Positions 2,905 through 19,700 of a DNA stretch of 64,000 nucleotides are shown here, in pieces (within the stretch, counting starts at the first letter, position 1; each line of letters begins with the position of its first letter). Made by a program: the position numbers and the translations under genes. This stretch comes from Chlorokybus atmophyticus (lineage: Eukaryota > Plantae > Mesostigma and Chlorokybus algae), in NCBI GenBank assembly GCA_009103225.1, contig RHPI01002438.1:688755-752754 (forward strand), in the 5' to 3' direction. The notes under the pieces are model-generated. The model searched no databases. It had not been told where the DNA came from and saw nothing but the letters and a program-made list of their open reading frames with translations.

Positions 2905-4210
2905 CACCGCAGCCATTCAGCAGGAAGAGCGCAAGCAACGCTACGACGGGCCGTCGTCGCCGTCGCCGCCTCCACCGCCACCGCCACCGCCACCTCCACC
3001 TCGTCGGCCAGGACTGTGGCAATGCCGTTGCTATGGGCAGTAATGCTGCCGCAGGCCCGCAGCACGGTATCTCAGACACTCCTATCAGTGCGTCGCAGAG
3101 TACGAGAAGTATCCCATGCGTGAGACCACTGGTCGGGTTTAAAGTTCACACTTGGGAAATCATGTGTTGGTCCCATGGTGCTGCGGCGGGTTGGGTGTCG
3201 GGAGGTGAACGGCGACATGTTGGCTGACTCTGTTACCGGTAGGTGGCATTTGCTAACACAAACAGAGCCAGCGGCCATCACACCCACAGATATACTGTAC
3301 AAAAATTACACAGCAACTTCCTCCTCCCAAGTGACTTCCGGTTGGAGACTCACAACAGTGTTGTTGCAACCATTGTTATTGCTTTCGTATGAGAATTTCT
3401 TTCTTTGGGATGGCATCGGCTAGGGCTTTCAGAATGGTTAAAACCGCTGGGTTGGGGCATTTGAAAATGGCTTGATAAAGTTGGGCAATGAAGGTATTAA
3501 TATTGTCATCATCGACAATAGTGCCGTTCTGCTAGCGGTCAAGCGGTAAGCGGTAAGCGGTTCCCATTTTGTCAAGACACATCATGCATTTAATGAGCAA
3601 TTATTTGTACACACGGTTGTCATCGTGCTCATATAATGGAATGTATATATATAATAGCTTAAGCTGGCGCAGACTCAGCGGCTATGGTGGGTTGATACAA
3701 GCGCATTACTGTGGAGACTTCGTTCAATTTGTGATGCACAGCTGGCAGCAGGTGCACATATCAAATAAGTGTACTTTTAAGCACATGCACGTCGCAGACA
3801 CCGCAATCGCAATAACTTGCTGACAGTCAGTGTGCGGGCCATTTGAAATTCGCATTCCTCACAGTGTTCATAGATGTTACGTGCGAGAAACAAGATAGAT
3901 AGGTGTCCATTGCAGTGATGGCTGCATGCATCCGCGACTTTTCAATATTGCACACTATTGCACATTAAATTTGTCGTGCCTGTCATGGTCGAGGGCAACC
4001 TTGTCTCGGGCAGGCTGCAGAGGAGTGCTAGTGCTGCACGCATGCTAGTGCCGTGCACTGCATTGGAGTCATGCAAGCAACAGACAACCCCCCAATCGTG
4101 GGCATAGACTTGAAGATGAGCCTACGCGGTGTTTAGTGCAGTGGACGAGCCGATGTTGCTCGCCACCTTTGTGTACAGACTGTGTCGTAGTGCACACAGT
4201 CAACAAGCCA

Positions 4211-4218
4211 CCCCCCCT
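4211..4218 (-). promoter_or_regulatory. Polypurine tract (AGGGGGGG) followed by TG
   Basis: Minus strand reads tcAGGGGGGG|TGGCTTG about 30 nt after the pol stop, the typical Gypsy PPT position. Confidence 0.7.
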
Positions 4219-4249
4219 GAGATTCTGGGGTAGCCCTCTGCTCCAGAAC

Positions 4250-7200
4250 TCAGTTCCTACCGACTGTGTGGGGGACCGTTGATGCGGCAGTCATCGCACC
4301 AGTATTCCCACAAGGGTACTGCGTCCAGCGGAGGTCAAGGCAGTAGCAGTGCATGCCTTGATTACAGCCATCGCATAACATCATCAATGGATCGTCGTCG
4401 GCGCTGCCACACTTCTCGCATCGGGTGCTGCGCAGCGGACGCGGGTGCTGGATCTGGGTGAAGCCAGCAATGTAGGGGAGATGACAGGGCGCACAATTGA
4501 CCATGTTGTCCTTCATGCGCTCGCCTCGTTGTCCCAACAGGTCCAGTACCCCTGTGGGGTGCACCTTCAATACCTTGTAAACAGCACGCCCGACGGAGGT
4601 ATCGAGGGTGTCGCGTGTGGACGCCATACGGTAGACGAAGTCTCCTGACTCGAAGCGGCGCTCCCGCTCCTTGTAGAAACCACTGCGCACACGCTCATAA
4701 CGCAGCGTGTCGCGGTGCTGCGCGATGCGCAGGTTGTTGAAGGCCATGGGGACTGTGTGTTCGAACAGCGCACTGCGCACTGTCAGATCATACAACATCT
4801 CGTCGGGGTTGTCGAGATTGTCCACCACTCTGTCGACCTCCTGCTGTGCGCGGAAAGGGAGCAATGGCTGCCTTCCGAACAGTAGATAGTATGGGCTGTA
4901 CTCTCGCAGGGCTGCCTGCTTGGACAGCCGGTAGCCCATTGCTACCCATGGGAGGTGATCATCCCAGGTATTCTTCTCGTAGGCAAGGACGTACTTGCGC
5001 AGTGCCTTCTTGATGGTCTGCACGGTACGCTCGGCGAGGCCGTCGGCCTGCGGGTGGTCGCGTGAGGTGCGACGGTGGTCGATGAAGCATCTGTCGATAA
5101 GCTTGTCGAAGGCTCCTCTGAACTCCGTACCCTGGTCGGTGATGACTTCAGCGCAGCTGCCGAAGCGTCCGAGTACATGGGAGAGGAAAGCCTGGGCTAC
5201 TCCCTCACTGCTCTTGTCGGGCAGGGGCACCAGCTCCACCCACTTGGAGAAGTGCTCGATCATGACGAGGATGTAGCGGTTGCCTCGCGCTGAGGGCGCT
5301 AGGTCTCCGAGGATGTCCAGTCCCCAGCGGTAGAACAACCCGGAAATGGGAAGGGGATGCAAGGTGGCATTGCGCGTGTTGAGGCTGGCGCGAACCATGT
5401 CACACTGCTGACAGTTGCTGACGAACTCCCGCACCTGTCTGTGCACCCCATACCACCAGTACTGGGTCCTGACCAGGCTGACCGTGCGCTTGACACCGAA
5501 GTGCCCGAGCTCGGTGTGAAGGGAGGAGATGATGCCTTCACGTGCAGCTGGTGTGGGGACCTCCTGATCTGCATCTTGTATCCGTCGATACAGCCTGTCG
5601 TTGGCCCAGCGGTAACGCTGAGTGCGTTGCCGGACGCGGTCCTTCTCGCGTGCGCTCATGCCTGCTGGAAGTTGTCCAGTCTGAAGCAGTGCGAGGGATG
5701 GCTCGTCCAGCCAGATGTCTTGTCGTGTGTCGGTGGGTGCCAGCTCCTCATCATCCACCTCAGGGTCGGCAGCGATTGCTTCTTCTGATAAAGGATCGGT
5801 GGTGGTGATGGCGGGCTCGAGAGCGGGCATGTCCCCGTCTGCTGCTGCCTCAGCGATCTGAGTCCTGCGTCCTGAGCGTAGCGCAGCGACAGCGAACATG
5901 GTGGCCACACCTGAAGGTGCAGCTGTAGGACCCAACTCATGTCGGGCGCCTGTGGCGTCGTTGGTGCTGAGGTGGGGGTTACGGCTGAGGCCATCCGCAT
6001 CCTGGTTGGCAAGGCCTGCGCGGTGTTCCACCTCGAAGTCGTACTCCTGGAGCAGCAGCGCCCATCGTGCTAACTTTCCTGTCAAGTGCTGGTTGTTCAT
6101 TAGCCACTTGAGGGGTTGATGGTCAGTGACCAGTTGGAACTGCCGTCCAAACAGGAAGGGTCGGAAGAAGGAGATGGCCCACACTGCGGCGAGACACTCC
6201 CCTTCGTAGCTGCTGTAGTTGGCCTCAGCACTGTTGTTGCTGCGGCTGGCGTACGACACTACGCGCTCCTTCTTGTTGTTGTCATGCTGTACGAGCACGG
6301 CCCCCATGCCGAGCTTGCTCCAGTCTGTGTGCAGGATGAACGACCTGGTGTAGTCAGGGCGTTGCAGAATGGGAGCTGTGGTGAGGCGGAGCTTCAGCTC
6401 CTGAAAGGCCTCCTGTTGTGCCTCCTTCCACAAGAACTCGGTGTCCTTCTTCAGTAGTTCGTTGAGAGGCCTTGCGATCTTGGCAAAGTCCTTGACAAAC
6501 CGGCGGTAATAGTTGGCAAGGCCGAGGAAGGCCCGCAGCCGCGTGAGGTCTGTGGGGGCAGGGATAGCCACCAGTGCTTCCACTTTGGCCTGCTGTACGT
6601 ACACACCATGGGGCACAATCATGTGTCCTAGGTAGGGTACCTTGTGGGTGAAGAAGGTGCACTTGTCAGGGTGCACCGTCATCCCGACTTCCTTCAGCCT
6701 CTGTAGCACCTCTTCGATGTGCTGGAGATGCTCCTCATTGCTGTGACTGAAGATGAGGATGTCGTCGATGTAGCAGCGTGCGAAGTCCAACCCCTTGAGG
6801 GCTTTGTCCATGACGCGCTGGAACTTGGCCGGAGCGTTCTTCAGTCCGAAGGGCATGACCTTCCACTGGTACAGCTGCCGGTTTCCCCAGAAGGAAGTCT
6901 TGTGCTTGTCCTCCTCCTTGATGGCGATCTGGTTGTACCCTTGGCGCATATCCAGGATACTATAGACCGTGCAGTCTCCTACATCGTCAAAGATGCCTTC
7001 TGCGGTAGGCATCGGATACCTGTCCTGCTTGGTCTTGTTGTTGAGGGGGCGATAGTCGCCACACATGCGCCGGTCTGTCCAGTTGCCTGCTGAATCTTTC
7101 TTCAGGGGCATGACGGTCGCGGCCGCAAAGTCCGATGTGGACTCCTCGATCAGGCCTGCCTCTAGCAGCGCCTTGCACCTCTGCTCCACCAAGTCTTCTT

Positions 7201-10200
7201 CTAGCTTGGAGAGGCGGTACTGTCTTCTGAACACCGGTTCGGTGTCCACTAGTTCAATGTCCATCTGGTATGCTGAGCAGATGCTCAGCTCCTTCACACT
7301 GAAACTGAATTGGCTCCTCCACTTGTTGAGGAGAGCCTCGAGTTGCTCTCGAGTCTGGCCTGTGGCCAGCGGTCCAATGGCGTGGGACCATGAGGTAGCG
7401 TTGGCGACCACTGGAATGTCTTCCACAGTAACTGCTGCCTGCTCCTCCATGTGGGCGGTCTCGAGGGCGGTGTGTGCTGCTTTGGTCTCTGAAAAGCGAG
7501 CAATCCACCCCCCAGCCAGGTGTTCGAGCTCCTGGAAGGACACATGGCGGTCCTGGAGAGCAAAGCACATTTCCAAGTACCACACCATGCTGCTCTGATC
7601 CATGGCGCGCCCTAACAACTGACATTGTTGACTGGTTGTCAGCGTGGAGCCTGCGATGCTGCTTGGAAAGAATCCCATAGCACGCTCGCGCTCGCGGGCA
7701 TTGGGTTCTTCCAGCCGTCCAGTGTTGGAGTCCAACACCATGCCGTCGCCTGCATTGCGGAACGCGTAGGAGCCTGGATGGGATACTAGTGTGGGTAGCG
7801 CGCGGCGCGGCTGACCCGGCTGGTTGCACTGGTAGAAGTGGTGGTGGTCAAGGCGTGTGACTGGTTGCGCTGTGCGTCCAGGGTCCAGGATGTCATCGAC
7901 GACGAGATTTCGTGGCCGATTGCTGTATAGGTACTCTGCCAGAAACAGGTCTTCCACAATGGCCAGGTTGGTCCACTTGGTGCGGACGCGGTGTGCACGA
8001 GATCCATAACGCGCGGCGTTGATTTTGAGAGGATGCCCCAGCAAGGAGCATACTTGCCGATAGGCCTTGGCGACGTGGTGCCGCTTGTCATCCTCGGAGT
8101 GCACATTCTCGATGATGTACCCCAAGGGCCTAGCGATCTGACTGATCTGTAGGAGTTTGATGACTCTCATTAGCTCCCAGAACAGCTGTGAGCGAGGATC
8201 CGAGAGCCCTTGGCCTCTGCCTGCCCTGGAGTGCCCTTGACACTCCCACCCTGCTATCAGCAGGTCAATGTTGCCGACTGCCTGCAGGTGATCCTTGGTA
8301 ATCCAGCGGATGTCCTGCGGTAGAGCCTTCTGGCTTCCTTGCAGTGCCGACAGTGGTAGCTGCTGCGGGTAGCGCTGGTGCAGCTGTCGTAAATGATGGC
8401 TCAGAGCCTCCTGTGCATGAGGGTCAGGGTCACAGTAGAGGTACTTGGTGACTGTTGTTCCTGTGTTGAGGACAGCCGCAAGCCCACTGACTATGCCTCC
8501 GAACAGCTCCAGCACGGTGATGCCTTGTTGTCGGCGGAACATGTGGAACTCCACAACTCCCGTAGCTATGTGGTACTGCTTCTGTACTGTAGCCTGGTCT
8601 TTGTAGGCAGGGAAGTGTGCAGTGAGCTGAGGCCTGGTCAGCAGCATGTGTGCTGCTACTTGTGCGCGCCAGCGACGCTCGGATGGCTCCTGAAAGGCCA
8701 CTTCTTTGGTGACAGTCTCTTGAGACTCATCGTACGGTGTAGGGGAGTCCTCTTCAGCGTTTAGGCTCGGGCTCGAGCTCGTTGCAGTTGTCCTTGGCTG
8801 CGTTCGGGCACGAGGCACACGTGAGCTTTTTGTAAGACTGTAGGTGGCTGCTGCAGCCGATCTTCGTTGCGAGCGGTCCTTGGCCACCAGTTCGAGAGGT
8901 AGGAATCCCTGCTCCTCTCCATCGTCCTCATCCCAATGTGGTCGAAACCATGCCTGCTCAGTCCAGCAGTCCAGCCCCATGCCGACAGGGAAGTTGCAGT
9001 CCTGTCCCAACAGTAGGTCAAAGGACCCGGCATCGGTGACCACACACCTTTGTACAATCTCGGTGCTGTGGGAAGGGTTTAGTCCGGTGAGGCGGATGCT
9101 CACAGCCTGCTTGGTAAGGCCGAGTACCTTGTCACGGTTGCCGGTTGCGGTGTCCAGCTGATAGGGACAGGGAAGCAGCTCAGCGCTGGTGATGCCGAGA
9201 TCTCGTGCGAGGTAGCGCCCAATGATGACAGGCTGTGCTCCAGTGTCCAGCATCACGCGTTTGGGTGCCCGCCCATTGACGGTCACGTGCTTGCCTTGGT
9301 TGGCGATCATGGCTGCATTGGCGTTGATGCGCAGCCTCTTGAAGCGACGGAACCTCTTGCGTGGAGAGACTGTTGCTTTATTCTCATCTGCGGGGCCTGA
9401 CCGTAGGGCAGCCAGGGCTCCTCTGCCTGATGGATCTTGTGGGCCTCCTTGTCCTCGGCTTTGTCCAAACCGTCCTTGTCGCGGTTGCTGGTACACGCGC
9501 GGTGGCCTAGGCACTGGAGGTGCTGCTGCAACCTGTCCAAGTGGAGGTGCAGGAGGGTTGACCCTCTGTGCAGCTGTTGTCATGCCAGGAGGAGTGGCCA
9601 GTGGCTGTGGCGGGAACCCTGGAGGACCTGGTGTTTGCGGGACTGCCTCTCGTGCAGCCTGCTCCTCTGCATAGGTCCATCGCACAGCATGGGCTGCCTC
9701 TCTGACTAGTGTACCTTCCCATGTCGCCGTCGCATTGTTGTCCACGTCTATATAGCGATGGTTCTGAGGCATGGGCTGCAGGTACACTGCGCGTAGGAGC
9801 CGCGCTCTCATGTCGTGGGTGATGGTGGGCACCCTGAGGATCCCTGCCATGTAAGCATCCCATCTGCCGTTGACCACTCCCACTTCCAGCACTGTTATTG
9901 CTCGTGTGCGTACAGTGAGCCGGGTCTCTGGCTGTTGGACATGCTGCTCGTAAGCAGTGGCGATGCGCCTGCGCTGACGTCCTGCCTCCACCCCTGGCAA
10001 ACTCAGTATCGCCTCCAGAGCTCCCTCCAGAGTGTCAGTGGCGGCGGAAGCCACTTCATCATAGGCTTGCCGTATGGAGCGAAGGAATGCGTCCACCCAC
10101 GCTATTCTGGCGCCGAAAGCGAACAACGGGACTGCGGGATGGTTGGTAACCAGCCACGTCACTAACCGTGCGCGTGCCGCGTTGCCATTGTCTCGCATCC

Positions 10201-11854
10201 CAAGCATCTGCCGCAGTCTGATGCCTTCTTGCCGATGCAGCATGGTTGCTTGTCGCAACAGAGCAGTGCGTAGTTGTTGCTCTCCAACCAGTCCTGCTCC
10301 ATCTCTTTGTGTACACCCTTGTGGTGTAAGGTAGCCCCTCCCTGGCTCCCTTTGGTCCTCAGGTAGATCCTCCACCAGCGCAGGCAGCAACGGGGCGATC
10401 ACCCCCCTGGTTTGTTGAGCCAACGCCCTCGCTTGGTCAGAGTTGGTCTCGACGAAGAGCGGAGTGGTGCTGGAGGATGGACCAGCAGTTGGTGACTGAG
10501 GTATTGGTGCACGTGTAGCTTCAAGAGCTTGTTCACGTGCAGCAATGGCGGCAGCTTGATCCTGTCGCCAATGATATGCTTGTTCCAGTGCGTGGTAGCG
10601 CTGATGAAGACGAGCGGTTGTAGGAGGTCCGAGTGCTTCATCAGTGCCCAAAGGCAGGTCGGCTGCGTCGGCGATTCGCTGCTGGATGGCGTCTCGGCGG
10701 TCCCGATACGTGTCCAACGGGCTGGGTTCAAAGGTGGTGGTTGGCATGCGTGCAGGCTGGCGCGGGGCGGTCTGCATGTTGTTGTGCAACGCCCAGAACA
10801 GCTGCAGAGCCAACTCCAACACTACAGGTGGGCTGTAGCTGATCAAAAACACCCTGTCACGCATCGGAGGTGCAGTGCCAGCAAGGATCTCATCTTCTAA
10901 CTGGTGTTGAGTGAGTGCTGGAAGGGTGTGAACCTCTGGTAGCGGGAAGACGCGATCATCGCGGGCGACACGCGTGGTGCGCTCCCCCCCCCGACCGAAG
11001 GCGATGGTAGTGGGGTCTGCTCCGCGCAGGATGGTTTCCCATGCTCGTTCAGCTTGCTGACCAGTTGGGACAGCCTGAGTGACGTCGAGAGCGGGCAGAG
11101 TGGCTGCGCGCGTCGCTGCAGAGACAGCGGGCTCGACGATGGCCATTGTGGCAGTTGCGACGGTATCGGTCAGTGGTGCGAGAGTTGTCTCAACGCCTAC
11201 GGACAGAGGCGCTGCTGCAGTGGGAAGTGCACCGCCCACTGGTGCAGATTCGGTAGTGATGGCGGCTGCTGCCAGTGTGCTCACCAGCGTCGGCGTCACG
11301 GTGCCCACCGGTGTACCAGGTCGTGGTGCAACTGGAGTGGATAATGCTGACGTTGATGGAGTCGACGTTGTAGCCGGTGTGGCTGTTGCTGCGGAGGCAG
11401 CACCACAGGTGGCTTCAGAGGAGGTGCCTGCTGATGTTGTTGCAGCTTCCCCTCGTGCTCGTCGTGATGGTTGCACGCGGGACGGAGTGTTCCTGTCTCT
11501 CTCGCGTTTTGCAGCCATCAGCGCCCATCGGGCCGTGTAGCAGGCGCGGTAGTCCTGCTCCTTGTCTTCCTCCAAGCGTGCCATACGCGCCATGAGGGCT
11601 GCCATATGGTCATCAGCTGGTGGGTTGGCTGAAGCCTTGGCGGCAACAGCAGCAGCGCGCGGACGTGTCTCTGGTCCCTTACGCTGAGGAGGTCTGTTCT
11701 TCCCCCTGTAGCCTTGCTCTTCCTTGCGAGCACTGGCATTGTTGTTGTTGTTACTGCCACCAGCGTTGTTGCTGTTGTGGGCTCCAGTGTTGTTGCTATT
11801 GTAGCCACTGAAGTGGTTGCCAGTGTGGCCCAGTGTTGTTGCTGTTATAGCCAC
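4250..11854 (-). CDS. pol: Pol polyprotein (2534 aa): unknown N-terminal region, aspartic protease, C5 DNA methyltransferase, reverse transcriptase, RNase H, integrase, PHD finger
   Basis: Protease VMLDTGA (DTG at 9239-9247). RT LDMRQGYNQI, MPFGLKNAPAKFQR, YIDD (6761-6772). RNase H HTDWS...YEGECLA...TDHQPL. Integrase H-x3-GH...C-x2-C (HTELGH...CQQC), WGLDILG, TDQGTEF, GLAERTVQTIK. C-terminal CEKC...LCDGC...HCYC. Confidence 0.97.
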   Translation of the reverse strand: MAITATTLGHTGNHFSGYNSNNTGAHNSNNAGGSNNNNNASARKEEQGYRGKNRPPQRKGPETRPRAAAVAAKASANPPADDHMAALMARMARLEEDKEQDYRACYTARWALMAAKRERDRNTPSRVQPSRRARGEAATTSAGTSSEATCGAASAATATPATTSTPSTSALSTPVAPRPGTPVGTVTPTLVSTLAAAAITTESAPVGGALPTAAAPLSVGVETTLAPLTDTVATATMAIVEPAVSAATRAATLPALDVTQAVPTGQQAERAWETILRGADPTTIAFGRGGERTTRVARDDRVFPLPEVHTLPALTQHQLEDEILAGTAPPMRDRVFLISYSPPVVLELALQLFWALHNNMQTAPRQPARMPTTTFEPSPLDTYRDRRDAIQQRIADAADLPLGTDEALGPPTTARLHQRYHALEQAYHWRQDQAAAIAAREQALEATRAPIPQSPTAGPSSSTTPLFVETNSDQARALAQQTRGVIAPLLPALVEDLPEDQREPGRGYLTPQGCTQRDGAGLVGEQQLRTALLRQATMLHRQEGIRLRQMLGMRDNGNAARARLVTWLVTNHPAVPLFAFGARIAWVDAFLRSIRQAYDEVASAATDTLEGALEAILSLPGVEAGRQRRRIATAYEQHVQQPETRLTVRTRAITVLEVGVVNGRWDAYMAGILRVPTITHDMRARLLRAVYLQPMPQNHRYIDVDNNATATWEGTLVREAAHAVRWTYAEEQAAREAVPQTPGPPGFPPQPLATPPGMTTAAQRVNPPAPPLGQVAAAPPVPRPPRVYQQPRQGRFGQSRGQGGPQDPSGRGALAALRSGPADENKATVSPRKRFRRFKRLRINANAAMIANQGKHVTVNGRAPKRVMLDTGAQPVIIGRYLARDLGITSAELLPCPYQLDTATGNRDKVLGLTKQAVSIRLTGLNPSHSTEIVQRCVVTDAGSFDLLLGQDCNFPVGMGLDCWTEQAWFRPHWDEDDGEEQGFLPLELVAKDRSQRRSAAAATYSLTKSSRVPRARTQPRTTATSSSPSLNAEEDSPTPYDESQETVTKEVAFQEPSERRWRAQVAAHMLLTRPQLTAHFPAYKDQATVQKQYHIATGVVEFHMFRRQQGITVLELFGGIVSGLAAVLNTGTTVTKYLYCDPDPHAQEALSHHLRQLHQRYPQQLPLSALQGSQKALPQDIRWITKDHLQAVGNIDLLIAGWECQGHSRAGRGQGLSDPRSQLFWELMRVIKLLQISQIARPLGYIIENVHSEDDKRHHVAKAYRQVCSLLGHPLKINAARYGSRAHRVRTKWTNLAIVEDLFLAEYLYSNRPRNLVVDDILDPGRTAQPVTRLDHHHFYQCNQPGQPRRALPTLVSHPGSYAFRNAGDGMVLDSNTGRLEEPNARERERAMGFFPSSIAGSTLTTSQQCQLLGRAMDQSSMVWYLEMCFALQDRHVSFQELEHLAGGWIARFSETKAAHTALETAHMEEQAAVTVEDIPVVANATSWSHAIGPLATGQTREQLEALLNKWRSQFSFSVKELSICSAYQMDIELVDTEPVFRRQYRLSKLEEDLVEQRCKALLEAGLIEESTSDFAAATVMPLKKDSAGNWTDRRMCGDYRPLNNKTKQDRYPMPTAEGIFDDVGDCTVYSILDMRQGYNQIAIKEEDKHKTSFWGNRQLYQWKVMPFGLKNAPAKFQRVMDKALKGLDFARCYIDDILIFSHSNEEHLQHIEEVLQRLKEVGMTVHPDKCTFFTHKVPYLGHMIVPHGVYVQQAKVEALVAIPAPTDLTRLRAFLGLANYYRRFVKDFAKIARPLNELLKKDTEFLWKEAQQEAFQELKLRLTTAPILQRPDYTRSFILHTDWSKLGMGAVLVQHDNNKKERVVSYASRSNNSAEANYSSYEGECLAAVWAISFFRPFLFGRQFQLVTDHQPLKWLMNNQHLTGKLARWALLLQEYDFEVEHRAGLANQDADGLSRNPHLSTNDATGARHELGPTAAPSGVATMFAVAALRSGRRTQIAEAAADGDMPALEPAITTTDPLSEEAIAADPEVDDEELAPTDTRQDIWLDEPSLALLQTGQLPAGMSAREKDRVRQRTQRYRWANDRLYRRIQDADQEVPTPAAREGIISSLHTELGHFGVKRTVSLVRTQYWWYGVHRQVREFVSNCQQCDMVRASLNTRNATLHPLPISGLFYRWGLDILGDLAPSARGNRYILVMIEHFSKWVELVPLPDKSSEGVAQAFLSHVLGRFGSCAEVITDQGTEFRGAFDKLIDRCFIDHRRTSRDHPQADGLAERTVQTIKKALRKYVLAYEKNTWDDHLPWVAMGYRLSKQAALREYSPYYLLFGRQPLLPFRAQQEVDRVVDNLDNPDEMLYDLTVRSALFEHTVPMAFNNLRIAQHRDTLRYERVRSGFYKERERRFESGDFVYRMASTRDTLDTSVGRAVYKVLKVHPTGVLDLLGQRGERMKDNMVNCAPCHLPYIAGFTQIQHPRPLRSTRCEKCGSADDDPLMMLCDGCNQGMHCYCLDLRWTQYPCGNTGAMTAASTVPHTVGRN
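4287..4420 (-). other. PHD finger (C4HC3) at Pol C-terminus; last C-x2-C pair out of frame by a 1-nt deletion
   Basis: In frame: CEKCGSADDDPLMMLCDGCNQGMHCYCLD. Adding one C near 4333 restores PPLDAVPLWEYWCDDC, the canonical PHD end. Confidence 0.85.
7570..8525 (-). other. Dnmt3-like C5 cytosine DNA methyltransferase domain embedded in-frame in Pol
   Basis: Motif I ITVLELFGGIVSGL; motif IV IDLLIAGWECQGHSRAG (8233-8251); RSQLFWE; motif VI IIENV (about 8102-8115); motif VIII INAARYGSRAHRVRTKWTN (cf. Dnmt3 IDA..VSAAHRARYFWGN); motifs IX/X ERERAMGF...LLGRAMD. Order and spacing match a C5-MTase catalytic domain. Confidence 0.9.
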
Positions 11855-13307
11855 TGAAGTTGTTGGCAGGGTGGTTGTAGCTGTTGGCGGGCCTCAACTC
11901 TGGGAACTTGAGCCAGCAGACTGACTCCAGATGACCAATCTTGTGACAGTGGTCGCAAACCAAAGTTGAGTATTCTTCGGTGCACTCCTTTTGGTAGTGC
12001 CCATGCCGTCCACAGCGATGACACAGCACAGGGGCAGCAAGTGCAGCATGAGCTGACCGTTTCCCTTTGTCGCGTGCTGGTGGAGCGTCCCGGCCACGGT
12101 CGCGGCGAGGAGGCTCAGTTGTCGTGCTGACTACAGGCCGTACGGCGCTGCGGTTGGTGTCCAGCACTGCCTTCTCATACACCAAGCGCTTGTGGATGGC
12201 TTGTGCAGTCTCGAAGGCTTCTTTGAGGGTGTAGCCAAGGGGCCTGCTGTAGTTCAGAGTCAGGCGTGTCGACTCGCTCAGAGCAGCATCCAACTCATTG
12301 ACGTATATTACTGCAGCAGCCTCCTCACTGACAATCTTGTAGTCAGTGTCCTTCAGCAGACCTTCCAGTCTGGAGTATAAGCGGAGGGGATCGTCATTGG
12401 GCTTGCATCGGAAGCGTCTCAGCTCCTCAACCTTGCTGGTGGTCTGAGGAGGGAAGGTACGGCGCAGGGCAGCGTACAGGTCCTTGAGTGGAGAATCAGA
12501 GATGGCAGCACCTACGGTGATGGCTGGTGCGCGCAGTGCTACTGACCCGAGGGTGAAAGCGCTGCCTCCTGCACGAGAGCCAGGTGTTGCTGGAGGTAGA
12601 GGAGTACCCCACTCTGCGGCTGCCGCTTGCTGTACAGCTCTTTGTTCCTCAATGATGCTGGCAGAACGGTCGAGGATGCGGACTCGACGTGTGGCCTCCT
12701 TGGACTCAACTTCTGCAGGGGTCGAGTTGACAAGTACCAACTCTGATTCCTCCTCCTCTGCCTGCTTGAGAGCTGCAGCTATGGTCAAGCCTGTTACTGC
12801 AGCTGAAGTGACAGGTGGAATGACACCTGCTGGACGGTGCAGGGCTGCAGATGCTATGGTGCTGGCAAGCTCGCCATAGCCGTCTACTCGATGCAGTTCA
12901 GCAACGGACTTCCAGACATCGTGTGCTTCATGATCAAGATACTGAGCAGCAATGTGGAAAGAGATCTCATCTGACCAGTCTTTGTTCTTCAGAGCTTGCT
13001 GCCGCATCTTGGAGTGGAACTTGATGATGAACTCATCCAGCGAGGTGGTGCCGGCACGTCCGGAGAAGCGCAGGGATGTGGTTGAACTGGAAGACTCCAT
13101 CTCGTTGTCGTCGCTGTCCGATGATAGTGGAGAAGCTGGATGACGAGGAGTAGAGTGGAGCGGGGTGAAGCTGGAGATGGAGCGCGAGCCTCTGCTGCTG
13201 CGGTCGATGCTTCCGTCACTGGTCCGCTCGTAGGTGAGATTGGTGGTTGGGCTCCAACTGCTGAGGTCACCCTCGTCTATTGGGGAGAACGGGGTGGGCC
13301 TGCTCAT
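11796..13307 (-). CDS. gag: Gag (503 aa) with capsid-like helices and two CCHC zinc knuckles
   Basis: FSGRAG..LDEFI..F...YLDHEAHDVW and LYAALRRTF...ELRRFRCKPNDDPLRLYSRL capsid-like segments. CHRCGRHGHYQKEC and CDHCHKIGHLESVC knuckles. Directly upstream of pol and overlapping it. Confidence 0.92.
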   Translation of the reverse strand: MSRPTPFSPIDEGDLSSWSPTTNLTYERTSDGSIDRSSRGSRSISSFTPLHSTPRHPASPLSSDSDDNEMESSSSTTSLRFSGRAGTTSLDEFIIKFHSKMRQQALKNKDWSDEISFHIAAQYLDHEAHDVWKSVAELHRVDGYGELASTIASAALHRPAGVIPPVTSAAVTGLTIAAALKQAEEEESELVLVNSTPAEVESKEATRRVRILDRSASIIEEQRAVQQAAAAEWGTPLPPATPGSRAGGSAFTLGSVALRAPAITVGAAISDSPLKDLYAALRRTFPPQTTSKVEELRRFRCKPNDDPLRLYSRLEGLLKDTDYKIVSEEAAAVIYVNELDAALSESTRLTLNYSRPLGYTLKEAFETAQAIHKRLVYEKAVLDTNRSAVRPVVSTTTEPPRRDRGRDAPPARDKGKRSAHAALAAPVLCHRCGRHGHYQKECTEEYSTLVCDHCHKIGHLESVCWLKFPELRPANSYNHPANNFSGYNSNNTGPHWQPLQWLQ

Positions 13308-13357
13308 ACAGCTGGTCCAGAGGTGAAAGGGTAGAGTGCTTGTGCTCTACCGTCTAT

Positions 13358-13373
13358 CCTGATGCTGTTACCA
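13358..13373 (-). promoter_or_regulatory. Degenerate primer-binding-site-like sequence
   Basis: TGGTAACAGCATCAGG about 50 nt upstream of the gag ATG; 12/16 match to the plant tRNA-iMet PBS TGGTATCAGAGCCAGG. Not preceded by an LTR-ending CA. Confidence 0.4.
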
Positions 13374-16300
13374 CCCAACACACTAGTGCTTGTGCGCACT
13401 ATGTGATGACAATGATAACGAATGCCCAGCGATGTATCCCTGGGTGCAGACTGAACTATCTGATGCAGATTGCAACACACTCACTTGTGCAAAGAGGGTG
13501 ACACTGTAAGTCAACAAGCCACTACGATAGGTAGTGCTGTGGACACAGTTCTTTGCATGAGTGGATAGAATGATACACTGTTAAGTGAGGTGAATGAGTG
13601 TGCAACACGTGGATGCAACACCCTGACTACTGAAACAACACACCACCGTCAAGCTCACAGCAATGGCAGGCACAGCGCACAAGAGCATGCACCGTGTCTC
13701 ACGCAGTAAGGGAATTCTTGGCAACCGGGGCAGCGTGCTTCCAGTTCAAGTCGCTTCACAAGCTCTTTAGACACAGAGTCTTTACTTCGTAGTACTCCTA
13801 GTACTCACAGTACTCACTTACAGTGTCACCAGCCAGTCTGGTGACGTGACTTCCTACTTATACATGTCAAATCATGACTGTGCAGTGCCACGCGGGCACT
13901 AGGCCAACGGTCACATCGAGGCCTCATGCTATTTCGGAAATCTCCTAAGACTTGATATAGCACATGTGTTCTTAACAGACTTGCAACTGATCAGCTACGC
14001 GCGGTCCCTACAGACAGGTCTATAAAGTAGCCCTAGCTACATGCTACATGAGTGATACAGTAGCTAGCAGTAGGCTGGGGCTCGCGCGGTCTTCATGCTG
14101 GTAGCCCGGGCGTGGGGCTGGGTGTAGACATGCTTGAGAAGAACTGGCATGCGAGGGTAGATGGCATGACAAATTGCACATTAATGCATATCTGATTTGA
14201 TATTATCGCAGCAGCGGCGCAACTCTATGCTATTGTGCTCAACTTGCTGCGCCGAAAATCCAGATTCATGTAACAGTCAGCACACACATTTGCTTAGGTA
14301 TTATTAAACTTTTATACATGAAGATACAAACTATTTACATGCGCCTCGCATCAAGCAATATTTTCTTATTTCATCCATGTCGTATTGCAGCAGCAAAGCC
14401 TATGCATCCATTCGTAGCAGTTTTAATTCTTAACATATAAATAAATAAAAATTTTGGGTTTTCGTACTGATTACAACAAAACAGTTGGCCATACAATAAT
14501 TATCAAGCAGAGTGTGAATATGTCCTCCCTACCACATGCCGTTCACATTGTTTGTATTACCCTGCTTAATCACGCACCGTGCAATATGACAACGCAAGTT
14601 TTTGGCATGTAGTTGATAAGAAAACGTTTTCGCAAAGGCATGCGTAAACAAACAGGAATGCCATCGAAGTCATTCTTATAATTGGCCATTTTTAACCTAC
14701 CCTCGAGAAGCTAAGTGCACCTATACTTGTACAACGAGTAAGAAGCGCTCGTCTGTATGTTGGGTGTGCGAGTCGTTTGGTAGTGCCATGATAGACATAC
14801 GTGCATTGATTTATGAGTAATAAGTGAAGCATGCATGAGTTGGGATTATAGCATACATAATGCAGTCCCAAGTTGTTTGTGAATGTCAAGTGCAATGCAT
14901 AACACGAGCTAGCATTGGTAAAAGACGCTTCGTTCACATACGGAGCACGTTAGGAGTGTATTGTGCATGGAGTGGAGTGCAAGATAAAATTTTATAAATT
15001 CAAATTTAATTATGTAATCGACTTTCATGTTTACGTGTTCAACTTCCGGCGCACGCTGTTGTTGGGCAAGCAGCCGATAGGTCTTAGCTAGTGATGAGCG
15101 AGTGGTATGTAGCACGACAATGTTGTCACTTTGTACACTTATTAATGAGTATAGGGCAAAGTTCGTGTTATGTCATGCACAACTACGTCATGCATACAGG
15201 CAGTATCTTCGTGCAATCAGCTTTTAGCACAGTCTGCTAGCTTCTGATGGAAGTTTAAGGTGTTTCTGCAAGCTTCCTTCCCTGTGGTTTACATGATTGA
15301 CAAATAGCTATGATAATTGCCTACCGTATGCACCATACGTATGCAAGTACATAGCATGTACTCTGAGCACCCTTTCCTTTCATAAGACTTTCAGGAAGCG
15401 AAAGGGAGCGAGAAGGAAGTCAAGTTAGAAAAATCACAATACCCAAGCCAATGCGCAACGGTAGTGGGGCAGGCAATGGCAGCGGGCAGCAATGGCTCGG
15501 CCAACTTGCGGATAAGGCAGGCAAGTATGCTTGGCAGGCTGATTGTGTAAACTTCATGCTTAAGACACAAGTGTTTGCAGCTCCGCATTTAATTTGGACA
15601 TGTAATTTGTAGGCTGTATTACAAGCTGTGCTCACAATAATAATCAACAGATGTTGGCATTGTTGCGACGTCACATGGTATGGTCTATGATGTGGAAGGG
15701 TCAAGAAAGCTGCTTAACGCCGTTTGTCAAATGCAGCTCTGCACACATAACAATAACCTTCTGTTATGCAGCTAAGGGTTTAATTAGCACCATGTATCAA
15801 GCTTCGACCAAGCTTTGTACTCCAAGGAGCATAACATTGCACATGGAGTGCGGCAACGTCGTGCGGGGAACTGCATGCTGCGCGCCAATGGGGCAACCTT
15901 ATCAACACACAACCACAAGTGCGGCGCAGAGTTGAGGTGGCAGCAAAAGTGCAATGGAGGAGGGAGGAAGGGCGAGTCCACCTCCTGCTGTGCTTGTCAT
16001 TATGGTGGGTGTTGCGATCAAGGCCGCTGACTATGGCGACATGTGCAGGTATAAGGCAAAGGCTGCAATGCATGCATGACCAACACGGGGGCGGGAGAGA
16101 TAGGGTGAGAGGTAGGAAGTTGGTAGCACACAGGCGCGTGCTAAACCGATGGTTGTATAAGAGATGACATGCTGCATTAGCCACGTGTGCATGTAGTGGT
16201 GAGTAACATGCAATGTTGTTGTCATGATTATTGCATGTCAAACGCATGCGCATATAAGCCACATCACATTGTACAGAAACCGCGAGAGGGGTATGCCCAT

Positions 16301-16763
16301 TCAGACCACACCACGCATGCACTTAGCAAAACATACTCACCTCGTTGCTACATACACCACCACTGGGCTACCTAGTCTACTCCTACACCTACATCTACGC
16401 CCCCCTGTTAGTCATGCATGCAAGCGTTGCAGTTGTGGTTACCTGCAGCAGCGCCACCTGGTTAGCGGCCTATTTGCAGCAGCACCAGCGGTCACAACAG
16501 CAGCAGGGTTTGGACTCCCCCTCCCTCCTTCCGTCTCCACACCCGCCCTCCTCCCGCCGTTTTGACGCTTTGCAGTCCGGTTGGCCGCAACTGCGTTGCT
16601 GCAGCCAGGGTCAGGGTTTGCGCCCATTGGCGCGCAGCATGCAGTCCCATGCACGGCATGCAGCACACTGCTGTCGCTGCGCTGCTGTGTATATACAAGC
16701 ACCTTAGGCACATCGTGTTGATGGTGAAACAGCCTGCTGGGAAAAACATAATGACCAGATTAA

Positions 16764-19700
16764 CTAAGCACCATGCACTTCAGCAACCAAGCCACGGCCA
16801 GTAGTCCTAAACTGCTCTACGACTGAAGCAAGATCAACCATGGGTAGCACATAAGGTGCTGCTTTGCCACTGTTGGTCTTTCTGCGTTTGGCTGGCGCTT
16901 CATCTTGCCCGCTTTCAGCCACAACAGAAACACGCTTGTACGCCTCTGGCCGCCACGTGACTCCGATCACATCACCACCATAGACATCGTAGTGAAATCT
17001 CGCTATTGACCCATAGCTAGCCTGCATAAGCACATGCTATGTGGTTGGTGTTGCAACATAATCATGGATGTTGAAAGAGAAACCATCAACCTACCACCAG
17101 CTTGTGCAGGTACTCGTGGACGGGGTCAAAGCCAACCAACAGAGCATCGCGCGCGGCTGCACCCTTGGCTAGTGCCGTGCGCGGCATGCGCCTGAGGTTG
17201 ATCTTGGGTTCCGCTTCACCATTCTGCATTGTGGACGCTAATGATGATGTTGAGAAAAGAGTCTGCTGCCAACGCGGGAGAGCCTCGCGGCGCAAGTGGA
17301 GAAGCGCGTCATACGAGACGAGTGGTGTGCGAAAGAGACGCAGCCATGCCTTGCCCGATATCTCATTGCGCTCAATCAGTTGCTGCAGAAGTTGTGATGA
17401 CGTGCGAGCATATGCGTTCAAGCGCTTTAACACATCTGTGTCGGGCCGATGGCGCGTCCACGAGTTGCTCTCCTTATCCTGTCCATAGCCGTTGCATATC
17501 AGACAAGATAAGCATGCGAACAACGCAGGACCTATACGAACAGCCACCATGCCTGCTTTTATGTGCGCAGCAATACCTGTGGCGTAGCTATAAACATAGC
17601 GGGCCCACCTCCCGGCAGCTTGCGCTTGATATCAAAGCGAGCCTGTCAAGTAGCAAAGCCATCGTGGTTACCAGAAGGTGAGTGTCGCTATGTACATGCA
17701 ATGTTGTGCCTGTGGCTAAAACCACACACGAACACGCGAGCACGCGCACACAAGTGCCCACACTGCACACACACGTGCACATGTGTGATAGCGCGCACAC
17801 AAATTTGCCTGTATGTGGGTTCGGTCATTGGCCGTCAACTCGCCATTCACATCAACAATAAGCGGGAATTGATGCCAGTCATGGCCGGTCAGCACCCTCA
17901 AGAATCGAATCAGCGCAGTGATACGTGACCGAGGCAGGCCAAACGGCTGCGGCTGTGTGAACACGCGCGCCATCAAGAGCTCCACTGCCTCCTCGCAGAC
18001 TTGGTTCCCAAACATGTGCGCTGAAACCCAGCGCTTGGCCAATCTGCAGGTTAAGAGTGTTCAGTTGAATGGATGAGATACAATTGCAGCAATGCAGGCC
18101 AGCAAAACAGGCCGACAACGCACACCTGACAGAAGGACCAAAAGCAGGGTACTGTCCATGAAGGCCTGACAGCTGGCTTGCGTGCACACTTCTGTGTCTC
18201 AAACTCTCCTCAAGCGCGGCTTGCTCGCTCTGCTGCTTGCGCTGCAGCGCTACTTCCTGTTCGCACAGTATGTGGACGCGGAAAGCAAACCCGTCATGGA
18301 AGACATCCAAGTATGGGTCTTGCGCCACGACGGTATGCATCCCAGCAGTTGCACGCAAGCTTTCGGCAATCTTGAGACAGAAGGCGGCTTTCATATGGCG
18401 CAGGGCCTCCGTGTCATTAGGCCACTTGCCGGATCCTTCCAACTCGAGCAACAACTCTATTGGGTGTACACAGAGTGGAACTGTTGAGCCATCCAACAGT
18501 TCATCGTGTAGCTTTCTTGAGCCGCCTCCGCCTCTAGCCAACGGGTGCGGTTGCGGCGGAAACACGTCCGCGTGCCTCAAGACTGCGCCGATACAACAAT
18601 ATTGTTATAACCCCACTTGCAAGCGGACTGCTGCTTTCACTCATAGCAAGCGAGTACTACTAACCTGCACTTAGTGGTTGCAGGCTCACAATCTTTAGAG
18701 GCAAGTCCGACAGGTTGCGCAGTTGCTTCGACAACTTATCGAAAGACTCTTGCACAATGGGTTCCACTGCGGAAGGGTCTTGCATACCATCCTTGCCAAG
18801 AAGCAACACTCTATCCAGCTGACCCGCAACCACATGGACGGCCGACTCATCCACGCTGAAGTGCCGCTGCAGGATGTGACGACACATCCTCTCAATAATG
18901 AGGTGCCTTTCACCTAGCGTAAGATATTGATAGATCAGACAATGGCAAAGTATACTTAAAACAAGCACACATATTAGAGCAGAGGTGTACACACTGACCT
19001 GCAGGGCACTCCCAGACTACAGACTCTGCAATCAGGCCATCTTTAAAGCGGCGAAGCTCAGCACGCGAGCCCCAAAAGTTCCTGAATGCCTTCGCCTCAG
19101 CCTTCTTGTCAGCAGCCGGCCCAATATCCACCAACCTGAGAGCCGCATCGCCCTCAGCTAAGACAATGCCCACGTCAATGGCGGGCTCAAGTGCTGGCAA
19201 CCCCTGTATGAAAGAGATAGTTGCTGAAGAGTGCGGATGGGACAAAGAGCCAGGTGTATGCGCACGCTTATGTATACCTTCTGGTTTGTGTCCCATGCAG
19301 GATTGGGCCTTGGAAAGACTCGCACAAAGGCCGCGCGGTCGGACAAGGCTTGCTTCAGTACTACTTCCACGCGGCGTTCTTGTTGGCGCCAAGTTGGCAC
19401 GTCCACACTGCCAAGCTCAATATTCTCCACAGGCAACAACACACTGCAAGAGAGTGTGATCCAATTGTGAGACGCGAGCTGACAGCATCACATCAGAACC
19501 ACAACAGCAAAAGGTAATGTAGGAAAGGCACCTCACGTGGTAATCAAACTTGAGGGCATATGAGACGGGCGTGAGGAATGTTGCCTCAAATGCTTCTTCA
19601 CCGCTGCCTTTGCGCTCGGAGTCCATCAGGTTCGCCAGCGTCGTCTTGGCTTCCCTCTTTAGATCCTGCACTGCCGTCTTGCTCACGTGCGCCGCCATGT

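Follow-up and report, generated by a model that had tools for sequence, protein, structure and literature searches.

The window analysed here, a stretch of 64,000 nucleotides of Chlorokybus atmophyticus DNA (contig RHPI01002438.1, positions 688,755 to 752,754), carries on its minus strand a retroelement in which a cytosine methyltransferase domain is embedded in the pol open reading frame (ORF). Sequence profiles and a structure prediction indicate that this domain is almost certainly a DNMT3-class C5 methyltransferase in a Gypsy-DNMT3 element, a kind that has been known since 2018 and is common in green algae and some land plants. The window copy, which is likely to be a young and nearly intact Gypsy-DNMT3 retrotransposon of the Ty3/gypsy type, is not evidence of a new kind of system; it adds an intact-looking copy from one more early-diverging genome of the green lineage, and the analysis of its relatives gives evidence of a large, old and constrained family. 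A transposon that carries the writer of a transposon-silencing mark inverts the usual host-parasite picture. Two layouts of pol, a repeated exchange of Pro and Glu in the catalytic motif and the breadth of hosts might be new; a literature search of incomplete coverage found no account of Gypsy-DNMT3 in this host and none of the two layouts or the Glu/Pro alternation.

Along the pol translation, Pfam families follow in the order protease, DNA_methylase (PF00145), RVT_1, RNase H, integrase zinc finger, rve and a weakly matched PHD finger. The gypsy-type reverse transcriptase (RT), RNase H (RH) and DDE integrase (IN) all share one ORF with the methyltransferase (DNMT), which is located between the protease (PR) and the RT, giving the order PR-DNMT-RT-RH-IN. 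The protease DTG, the RT YIDD, the acidic residues of RNase H and integrase and the integrase H2C2 can all be read in the translation. The RT-RNase H-integrase order and the CCHC motifs of gag bear out the gypsy identity given in an earlier reading of the sequence (the original prediction). That reading had also described a complete, ordered and stop-free set of C5 methyltransferase motifs in frame between protease and RT, and we verified all six of them (I, IV, VI, VIII, IX and X) in canonical, unpermuted order within positions 7570-8525, in a domain that contains neither intron nor stop. The domain has the DNMT3 fold in full and extends slightly beyond these positions, to 7535-8557. Its catalytic Cys is retained, as are the motif I glycines, the Glu of the ENV motif and both Arg residues of motif VIII. 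The profile search with PF00145 that had been proposed as a check gave a match of 40.3 bits (E 3e-10) in the whole of pol and of 44.3 bits (E 2e-11) on the excised domain, above the curated cut-off of 22 bits.

The assignment to the DNMT3 class, likewise anticipated in the original prediction, is where Pfam, profile and structure comparisons all point. A phmmer search of PDB sequences with the single window sequence returned DNMT3C, 3A and 3B as the best matches (E ~2e-7), followed by M.HaeIII and M.HhaI. With a profile of 28 domains (alignment A1), the match to DNMT3A reached 1e-27 and that to DNMT3B 1e-24, followed by DRM (7e-14), M.HhaI (5e-9) and DNMT2 (3e-7), and DNMT1 was absent at E<0.01 from this search of PDB sequences. 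An AlphaFold2 model built on A1 had a mean pLDDT (per-residue confidence score) of 92.5 and a pTM (predicted template modelling score) of 0.91. The top 50 Foldseek matches of the model in the PDB were all DNMT3A/B/C, with E values down to 6e-20 and target-normalised TM scores of 0.81-0.84 against DNMT3 catalytic-domain chains. Profile and structural matches of this strength lie far outside what chance would give. Because the motif order is unpermuted, the window domain is not DRM-like. N-terminal PWWP or ADD reader domains were not found among the Pfam families in pol; the window domain is a captured catalytic domain and not a cellular Dnmt3 gene.

DNMT-bearing retrotransposons had been attributed in the original prediction to charophytes and dinoflagellates, rightly so (PMC5890265), and had been thought rare; instead, a search of 1.84 billion representatives with the A1 profile gave 580 representative clusters (50% identity) at E<=1e-30. 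All 150 among the matches listed scored >314 bits. Named hosts include Closterium sp. NIES-53, NIES-54, NIES-65 and NIES-68, the liverwort Calypogeia fissa, Hariotina reticulata and Cymbomonas tetramitiformis; no Klebsormidium nitens sequence was among the matches. One family member (P0241) is filed as ‘DNA cytosine methyltransferase [Candidatus Obscuribacterales bacterium]’ in a metagenome-assembled genome and is probably eukaryotic contamination of the bacterial bin.

Across the family the domain is under strong constraint. Among the 28 A1 domains, which share a mean identity of 44%, 26 columns are invariant, including the catalytic Cys, the ENV Glu, AHRxRxxW and the E-R of motif IX; the motif I glycine is invariant as well, and the ERE of motif IX is found in 27 of the 28. 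Pairs of related metagenome loci (dS 0.07-1.3, mostly E-type, i.e. with Glu before the catalytic Cys) gave dN/dS values of 0.01-0.17 for the DNMT domain, far from the value near 1 that had been named as the sign of decay. The RT, RH and IN segments of most such pairs gave 0-0.07, the exception being 0.68 for one 25-codon IN segment. At the amino acid level the window copy is 47-48% identical to its nearest relatives in DNMT, 54-61% in RT, 64-71% in RNase H, 57-61% in integrase and 35-44% in protease; with its closest public relative, it shares only 47-49% of the residues of the DNMT domain.

Variation within the organism was assessed on positions 5000-10999 with the very fragmented Logan contigs of two runs that both hold the window sequence (X1 and X2). 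The X1 contigs comprised 66 at >=99%, 91 at 95-99% and 162 at 90-95% identity, which points to many diverged copies of the element in the organism. The 40 best-supported differences between the contigs of the two runs and the window copy in pol were synonymous in 26 cases and nonsynonymous in 14, with 10 and 4, respectively, at pol residues 546-1045. Transitions among copies touched a CpG in 8 of 30 cases.

Motif IV had been read as GWECQ, with the catalytic Cys kept and the preceding Pro replaced, and this is correct. Whether ECQ is fixed across other copies had been raised as a check; the Glu is neither private to the window copy nor fixed in the family. Before the catalytic Cys, A1 has Glu in 15 domains, Pro in 12 and Ser in one, and an 80-row tree of family and outgroup domains has Glu in 38, Pro in 34, Asp in 4, Ser in 3 and Cys in 1, while the catalytic Cys is present in all 80 sequences. 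The outgroup of the DNMT trees consists solely of stand-alone DNMT3-type metagenome ORFs, and the five among the 80 rows all carry Pro before the Cys. On this tree at least 9 changes between Pro and Glu are required, each of which takes two base changes (GAA/GAG to or from CCN); one Ala intermediate was seen. The family pairs with the lowest dN/dS are mostly E-type, and E-type lineages reach values as low as the P-type pair. The motif IV Glu is compatible with long-term constraint on the domain.

The position of the methyltransferase within pol varies as well. Of 187 proteins, 13 clearly have layout (a), PR-DNMT-RT-RH-IN, which is that of the window copy, and 11 more are compatible with it; 86 clearly have layout (b), RT-RH-DNMT-IN-PHD, with 23 more compatible. 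An IQ-TREE phylogeny of the DNMT domain recovered the family as monophyletic relative to the stand-alone ORFs (100/100) and layout (b) as one clade (98/100), with layout (a) as an unresolved basal set to which the window, Closterium and Calypogeia belong. A single branch separates the two layouts in the tree of RT-RNase H (SH-aLRT 99%). The two trees agree on the layout split and therefore point to one capture and one relocation. Named hosts of layout (a), Closterium and Calypogeia, are streptophytes and those of layout (b), Cymbomonas and Hariotina, chlorophytes; with few named genera on each side, this division is a lead, not a result. We regard as rather doubtful the broader scenario in which a single capture preceded the chlorophyte-streptophyte split, inheritance was largely vertical with one move of the DNMT in pol, and repeated Pro/Glu toggling under constraint implies an active E-C enzyme, in place of an acquisition in the Klebsormidium lineage. 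The natural E-C and P-C catalytic motifs and the two domain positions in pol provide experimental handles and a natural panel of variants.

The domain is probably a working methyltransferase, and its action might run as follows. The DNMT3-type enzyme would be made within Gag-Pol and packaged with RT and integrase, and, much as the original prediction had proposed, it could then methylate cytosines in the double-stranded cDNA of the element or, after integration, in the new copy. CG would be the probable context, by analogy with the DIRS-borne DNMT3 of Symbiodinium. A new insertion would then bear a host-like methylation state rather than resembling naked foreign DNA. This specific role in self-methylation in cis is put forward tentatively, as a possibility that may well prove wrong.

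Several observations weigh against these proposals. To our knowledge, nearly all characterised C5 methyltransferases have Pro where motif IV of the window has Glu. Within the DNMT domain, the differences seen in the X1 and X2 contigs were 6 synonymous to 6 nonsynonymous, a small sample in which nonsynonymous changes are nevertheless below the neutral expectation. The CpG observed/expected ratio is 0.70 in the element and 0.80 on average in the window, a slight contrast, and CpG depletion as a footprint of self-methylation was rejected because this contrast is too small. Transcription is backed solely by one weak 153-nt contig (X5, positions 8089-8241) from a run whose RNA status was guessed. 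The window copy itself may be non-autonomous, given a +1 frame change from gag to pol and a frame-split PHD finger. The enzyme activity of gypsy-borne DNMT3 domains is a predicted one, and the gypsy-borne domain of Klebsormidium nitens gave no methylation in yeast; the authors of that study call the result inconclusive because human DNMT3B also failed there (PMC5890265).

The latter result, that KnitGypsy-Dnmt3 showed no activity in yeast (PMC5890265), would also fit a protein that has kept the DNMT3 fold without being a DNA methyltransferase in vivo and that instead serves as a DNA- or chromatin-binding or oligomerisation module, like DNMT3L or DNMT3B3, and assists the preintegration complex in finding or holding its target. 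The loss of Pro would then mark lost catalysis; Glu stands in its place in about half of the family, the window copy among them, and motif X departs from the canonical form. However, dead DNMT3 paralogues lose catalytic residues, whereas here all 80 sequences keep the Cys, and a family with a mean identity of 44% shows no variation in the Glu of ENV, the two Arg of motif VIII or the glycine of motif I. The dN/dS of E-type lineages is as low as that of the P-type pair, and with at least 9 Pro/Glu interchanges a tolerant position fits better than a one-way loss. We consider a non-catalytic module improbable. A catalytic domain could alternatively have, in place of double-stranded DNA, RNA or an RNA:DNA hybrid as its substrate, such as the primer or the genomic RNA that serves as template; DNMT2, with the same fold, acts in this way. 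The genome of the element is RNA, the enzyme adjoins the RT, RNA methylation has been suggested for a LINE-borne DNMT by de Mendoza et al. (PMC5890265), and such a substrate would account for the absence of DNA methylation in yeast. Yet the profile match is far stronger to DNMT3 (1e-27) than to DNMT2 (3e-7), the top structural matches are all DNA-bound DNMT3, and the region between motifs VIII and IX, which recognises DNA in DNMT3, is conserved in the family (PTLVS..GSYAFR), leaving an RNA substrate very improbable.

The window copy lacks long terminal repeats (LTRs) and has two frame problems, as would be expected if a host Dnmt3 fragment had recently been captured by, or nested in, one dead element and were set to decay as a passenger. 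Such a fragment would not be found in frame in hundreds of diverged elements from several algal and plant hosts, nor with DNMT and RT trees that agree on the main split. The dN/dS is far below 1, pol runs for 2534 codons without intron or stop, and the related loci carry RT or IN and are not host genes devoid of them. The passenger explanation was rejected on the family-wide in-frame domain, the concordant trees and the low dN/dS, and is scarcely credible. We retain a DNMT3-type enzyme built into the Pol of the element as the preferred reading.

Comparison with described systems places the window copy beside KnitGypsy-Dnmt3 of K. nitens, reported in 2018 as an intronless, unrearranged Dnmt3 domain in a gypsy Pol with Ka/Ks <0.2 and DIRS-like repeats (PMC5890265). 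Both are intronless, unrearranged Dnmt3-type domains in the gypsy Pol of a streptophyte alga, keep the key catalytic residues, have a poorly canonical motif X and lack an ordinary LTR pair, and purifying selection is common to the K. nitens element (Ka/Ks <0.2) and the family of the window copy (0.01-0.17 for the pairs analysed here). They differ in host and in that the A-coding-B-A-B repeats of KnitGypsy-Dnmt3 are undetectable in the window copy, though present in its relative L001. In the retroelement SymbioDIRS-Dnmt3, too, a domain of the Dnmt3 class is part of Pol, cDNA synthesis precedes integration, and two domain orders coexist in the family. By contrast, its backbone is that of a DIRS element, with a tyrosine recombinase rather than a DDE integrase, it stems from an independent capture, and its Dnmt3 domains were shown in a yeast assay to methylate CG de novo (PMC5890265).

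Cellular DNMT3A, 3B and 3C are the best profile and structural matches and share the motif order I-IV-VI-VIII-IX-X and a motif VIII of the SAAHRxRxxWxN type. They are, however, only ~21-23% identical to the window domain and have P-C in motif IV where the window has E-C. The window domain also differs from them in lacking upstream PWWP and ADD domains, with a PHD finger at the far end of the integrase instead, in a segment between motifs VIII and IX that is ~20 residues longer, and in a motif X of the form LGxAMD. Plant DRM proteins, which are Dnmt3-related and the second-best class by profile (7e-14), differ in their circularly permuted motifs. DAM-LTR and EpiLTR elements are LTR-type retroelements with captured DNA methyltransferase modules and chromatin readers, but their methyltransferases are of the prokaryotic adenine type, and EpiLTRs combine chromodomains with a DNMT4-related cytosine methyltransferase. 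The 2026 preprint that describes them cites ‘streptophytes (Gypsy-DNMT3)’ as established and treats DAM-LTR and EpiLTR as distinct (bioRxiv 10.64898/2026.05.21.726589).

Features of the element, all on the minus strand of the window (aa, amino acids of pol unless stated; positions count from the first nucleotide of the window)
Feature	Positions	Strand	Basis
Whole retroelement, ~10.2 kb as read here	3972-14171	minus	sequence reading of ends; GC rise inside
gag ORF, 503 aa (gag), CCHC zinc knuckles	11796-13307	minus	ORF list; Pfam zf-CCHC
46-nt tandem duplication (88% match) in 24-nt-period array, gag-to-pol frame passage	11784-11874	minus	sequence; both ORFs
pol ORF, 2534 codons, stop-free	4250-11854	minus	ORF list; translation; Pfam
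N-terminal ~850 aa of pol, partly Ala/Thr/Pro-rich	9302-11854	minus	no Pfam family
Aspartic protease, aa 857-952, DTG motif	8999-9286	minus	Pfam; motif check
DNMT3-type C5 cytosine methyltransferase domain (predicted), aa 1100-1440	7535-8557	minus	Pfam; PDB profile search; AlphaFold2 and Foldseek
Motif I, LELFGGI	8492-8512	minus	
Motif IV, AGWECQGHS (catalytic Cys codon 8240-8242, Glu codon 8243-8245)	8228-8254	minus	
Motif VI, IIENV	8102-8116	minus	
Motif VIII, GSRAHRVRTKWTN	7967-8005	minus	
Motif IX, ERERAMGF	7670-7693	minus	
Motif X, LLGRAMD	7598-7618	minus	
Reverse transcriptase (RVT_1), aa 1593-1746, YIDD motif	6617-7078	minus	Pfam; motif check
RNase H	6041-6430	minus	Pfam
Integrase: H2C2 zinc domain (5387-5551) and rve core (5054-5329)	5054-5551	minus	Pfam
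C-terminal PHD finger, frame-split	4287-4420	minus	weak Pfam match; translation; relatives

The gag of the window shows weak homology to the gag part of three relatives (P0002, P0003 and P0029), and no homologues of the first ~850 residues of pol were detected in relatives, although most differences among copies in that part are synonymous. The pol ORF lies in the +1 frame relative to gag, with the switch inside the 46-nt duplication, and the peptide FSGYNSNNTG occurs once in each of the two ORFs. In several relatives with the window layout, CCHC and DNMT are contained in a single ORF; the junction in the window copy is either a lesion or a programmed frameshift. At the other end of pol, the first part of the PHD finger (CEKC...HCYCLD, 4322-4420) is in the pol frame and its last part (PPLDAVPLWEYWCDDC, 4287-4334) in another. 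Relatives have H.YCL.PPL..VP.G.W.C..C within one frame, whereas in the window copy the last W.C..C, with its Cys pair, is out of frame. Both frame changes could be true lesions or assembly errors, and neither touches the methyltransferase domain.

The GC content of the element, 0.58-0.60, is raised over that of its surroundings. Its termini, TGTCATGCC at the start (14171-14163) and GGCACGACA at the finish (3980-3972), form a terminal inverted repeat, albeit an imperfect one. Immediately beyond each end lies the same 12-mer, TTAATGTGCAAT (within 3957-3980 and 14163-14183), and its 3' outer copy is located in a short tandem repeat of the GTGCAAT type. Repeat finding, self-blastn, blastn-short of both flanks and local alignment against shuffled sequences revealed no LTR pair in the element, and the window copy therefore lacks the long terminal repeat pair that characterises Ty3/gypsy LTR elements. 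The sole piece common to both flanks is a 14-mer (4198-4211 and 13509-13522) whose score falls inside the shuffle range. DIRS-like split direct repeats (A-coding-B-A-B) were likewise not found, as no alignment between or within the untranslated ends of the window copy exceeded the shuffled controls.

In its closest full-length relative (L001, element at 8595-18742), split direct repeats were found around the coding region (9251-9667/17351-17764, 17146-17442/18038-18334 and 8595-8982/18355-18742), in the DIRS-like arrangement described for K. nitens. In two other contigs (L007 and L033) the first 122 or 141 bases recur at the opposite end with 99-100% identity, a pattern that a circular or head-to-tail assembly of the element would produce. 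The stand-alone DNMT3-type ORFs of 300-350 aa come from marine and lake metagenomes (L064-L082, e.g. L068:135-1034 and L080:3099-4139); they match DNMT3B/3C with E values of 1e-27 to 1e-30, RT and integrase are not nearby, and their carriers may be viruses, phages or picoeukaryotes. Three loci from moss-associated metagenomes (L072, L076 and L077), in which the DNMT domain is split into four frame-shifted pieces with ~1.6 kb inserted between motifs VI and VIII, are decayed or interrupted copies.

No further copies of the element were found within the 64-kb window, and the other repeats of the window are unrelated to it. These include two large inverted repeat pairs (32403-37545/58715-63807 and 42082-46273/51130-55193) with 76-84% identity and no match to the gypsy domains used, which are probably other transposable elements. 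A run of N, an assembly gap preceded by a poly-C tract, begins at ~56061 and is the cause of a GC dip and of spurious six-frame ORFs at 55.7-57.2 kb.

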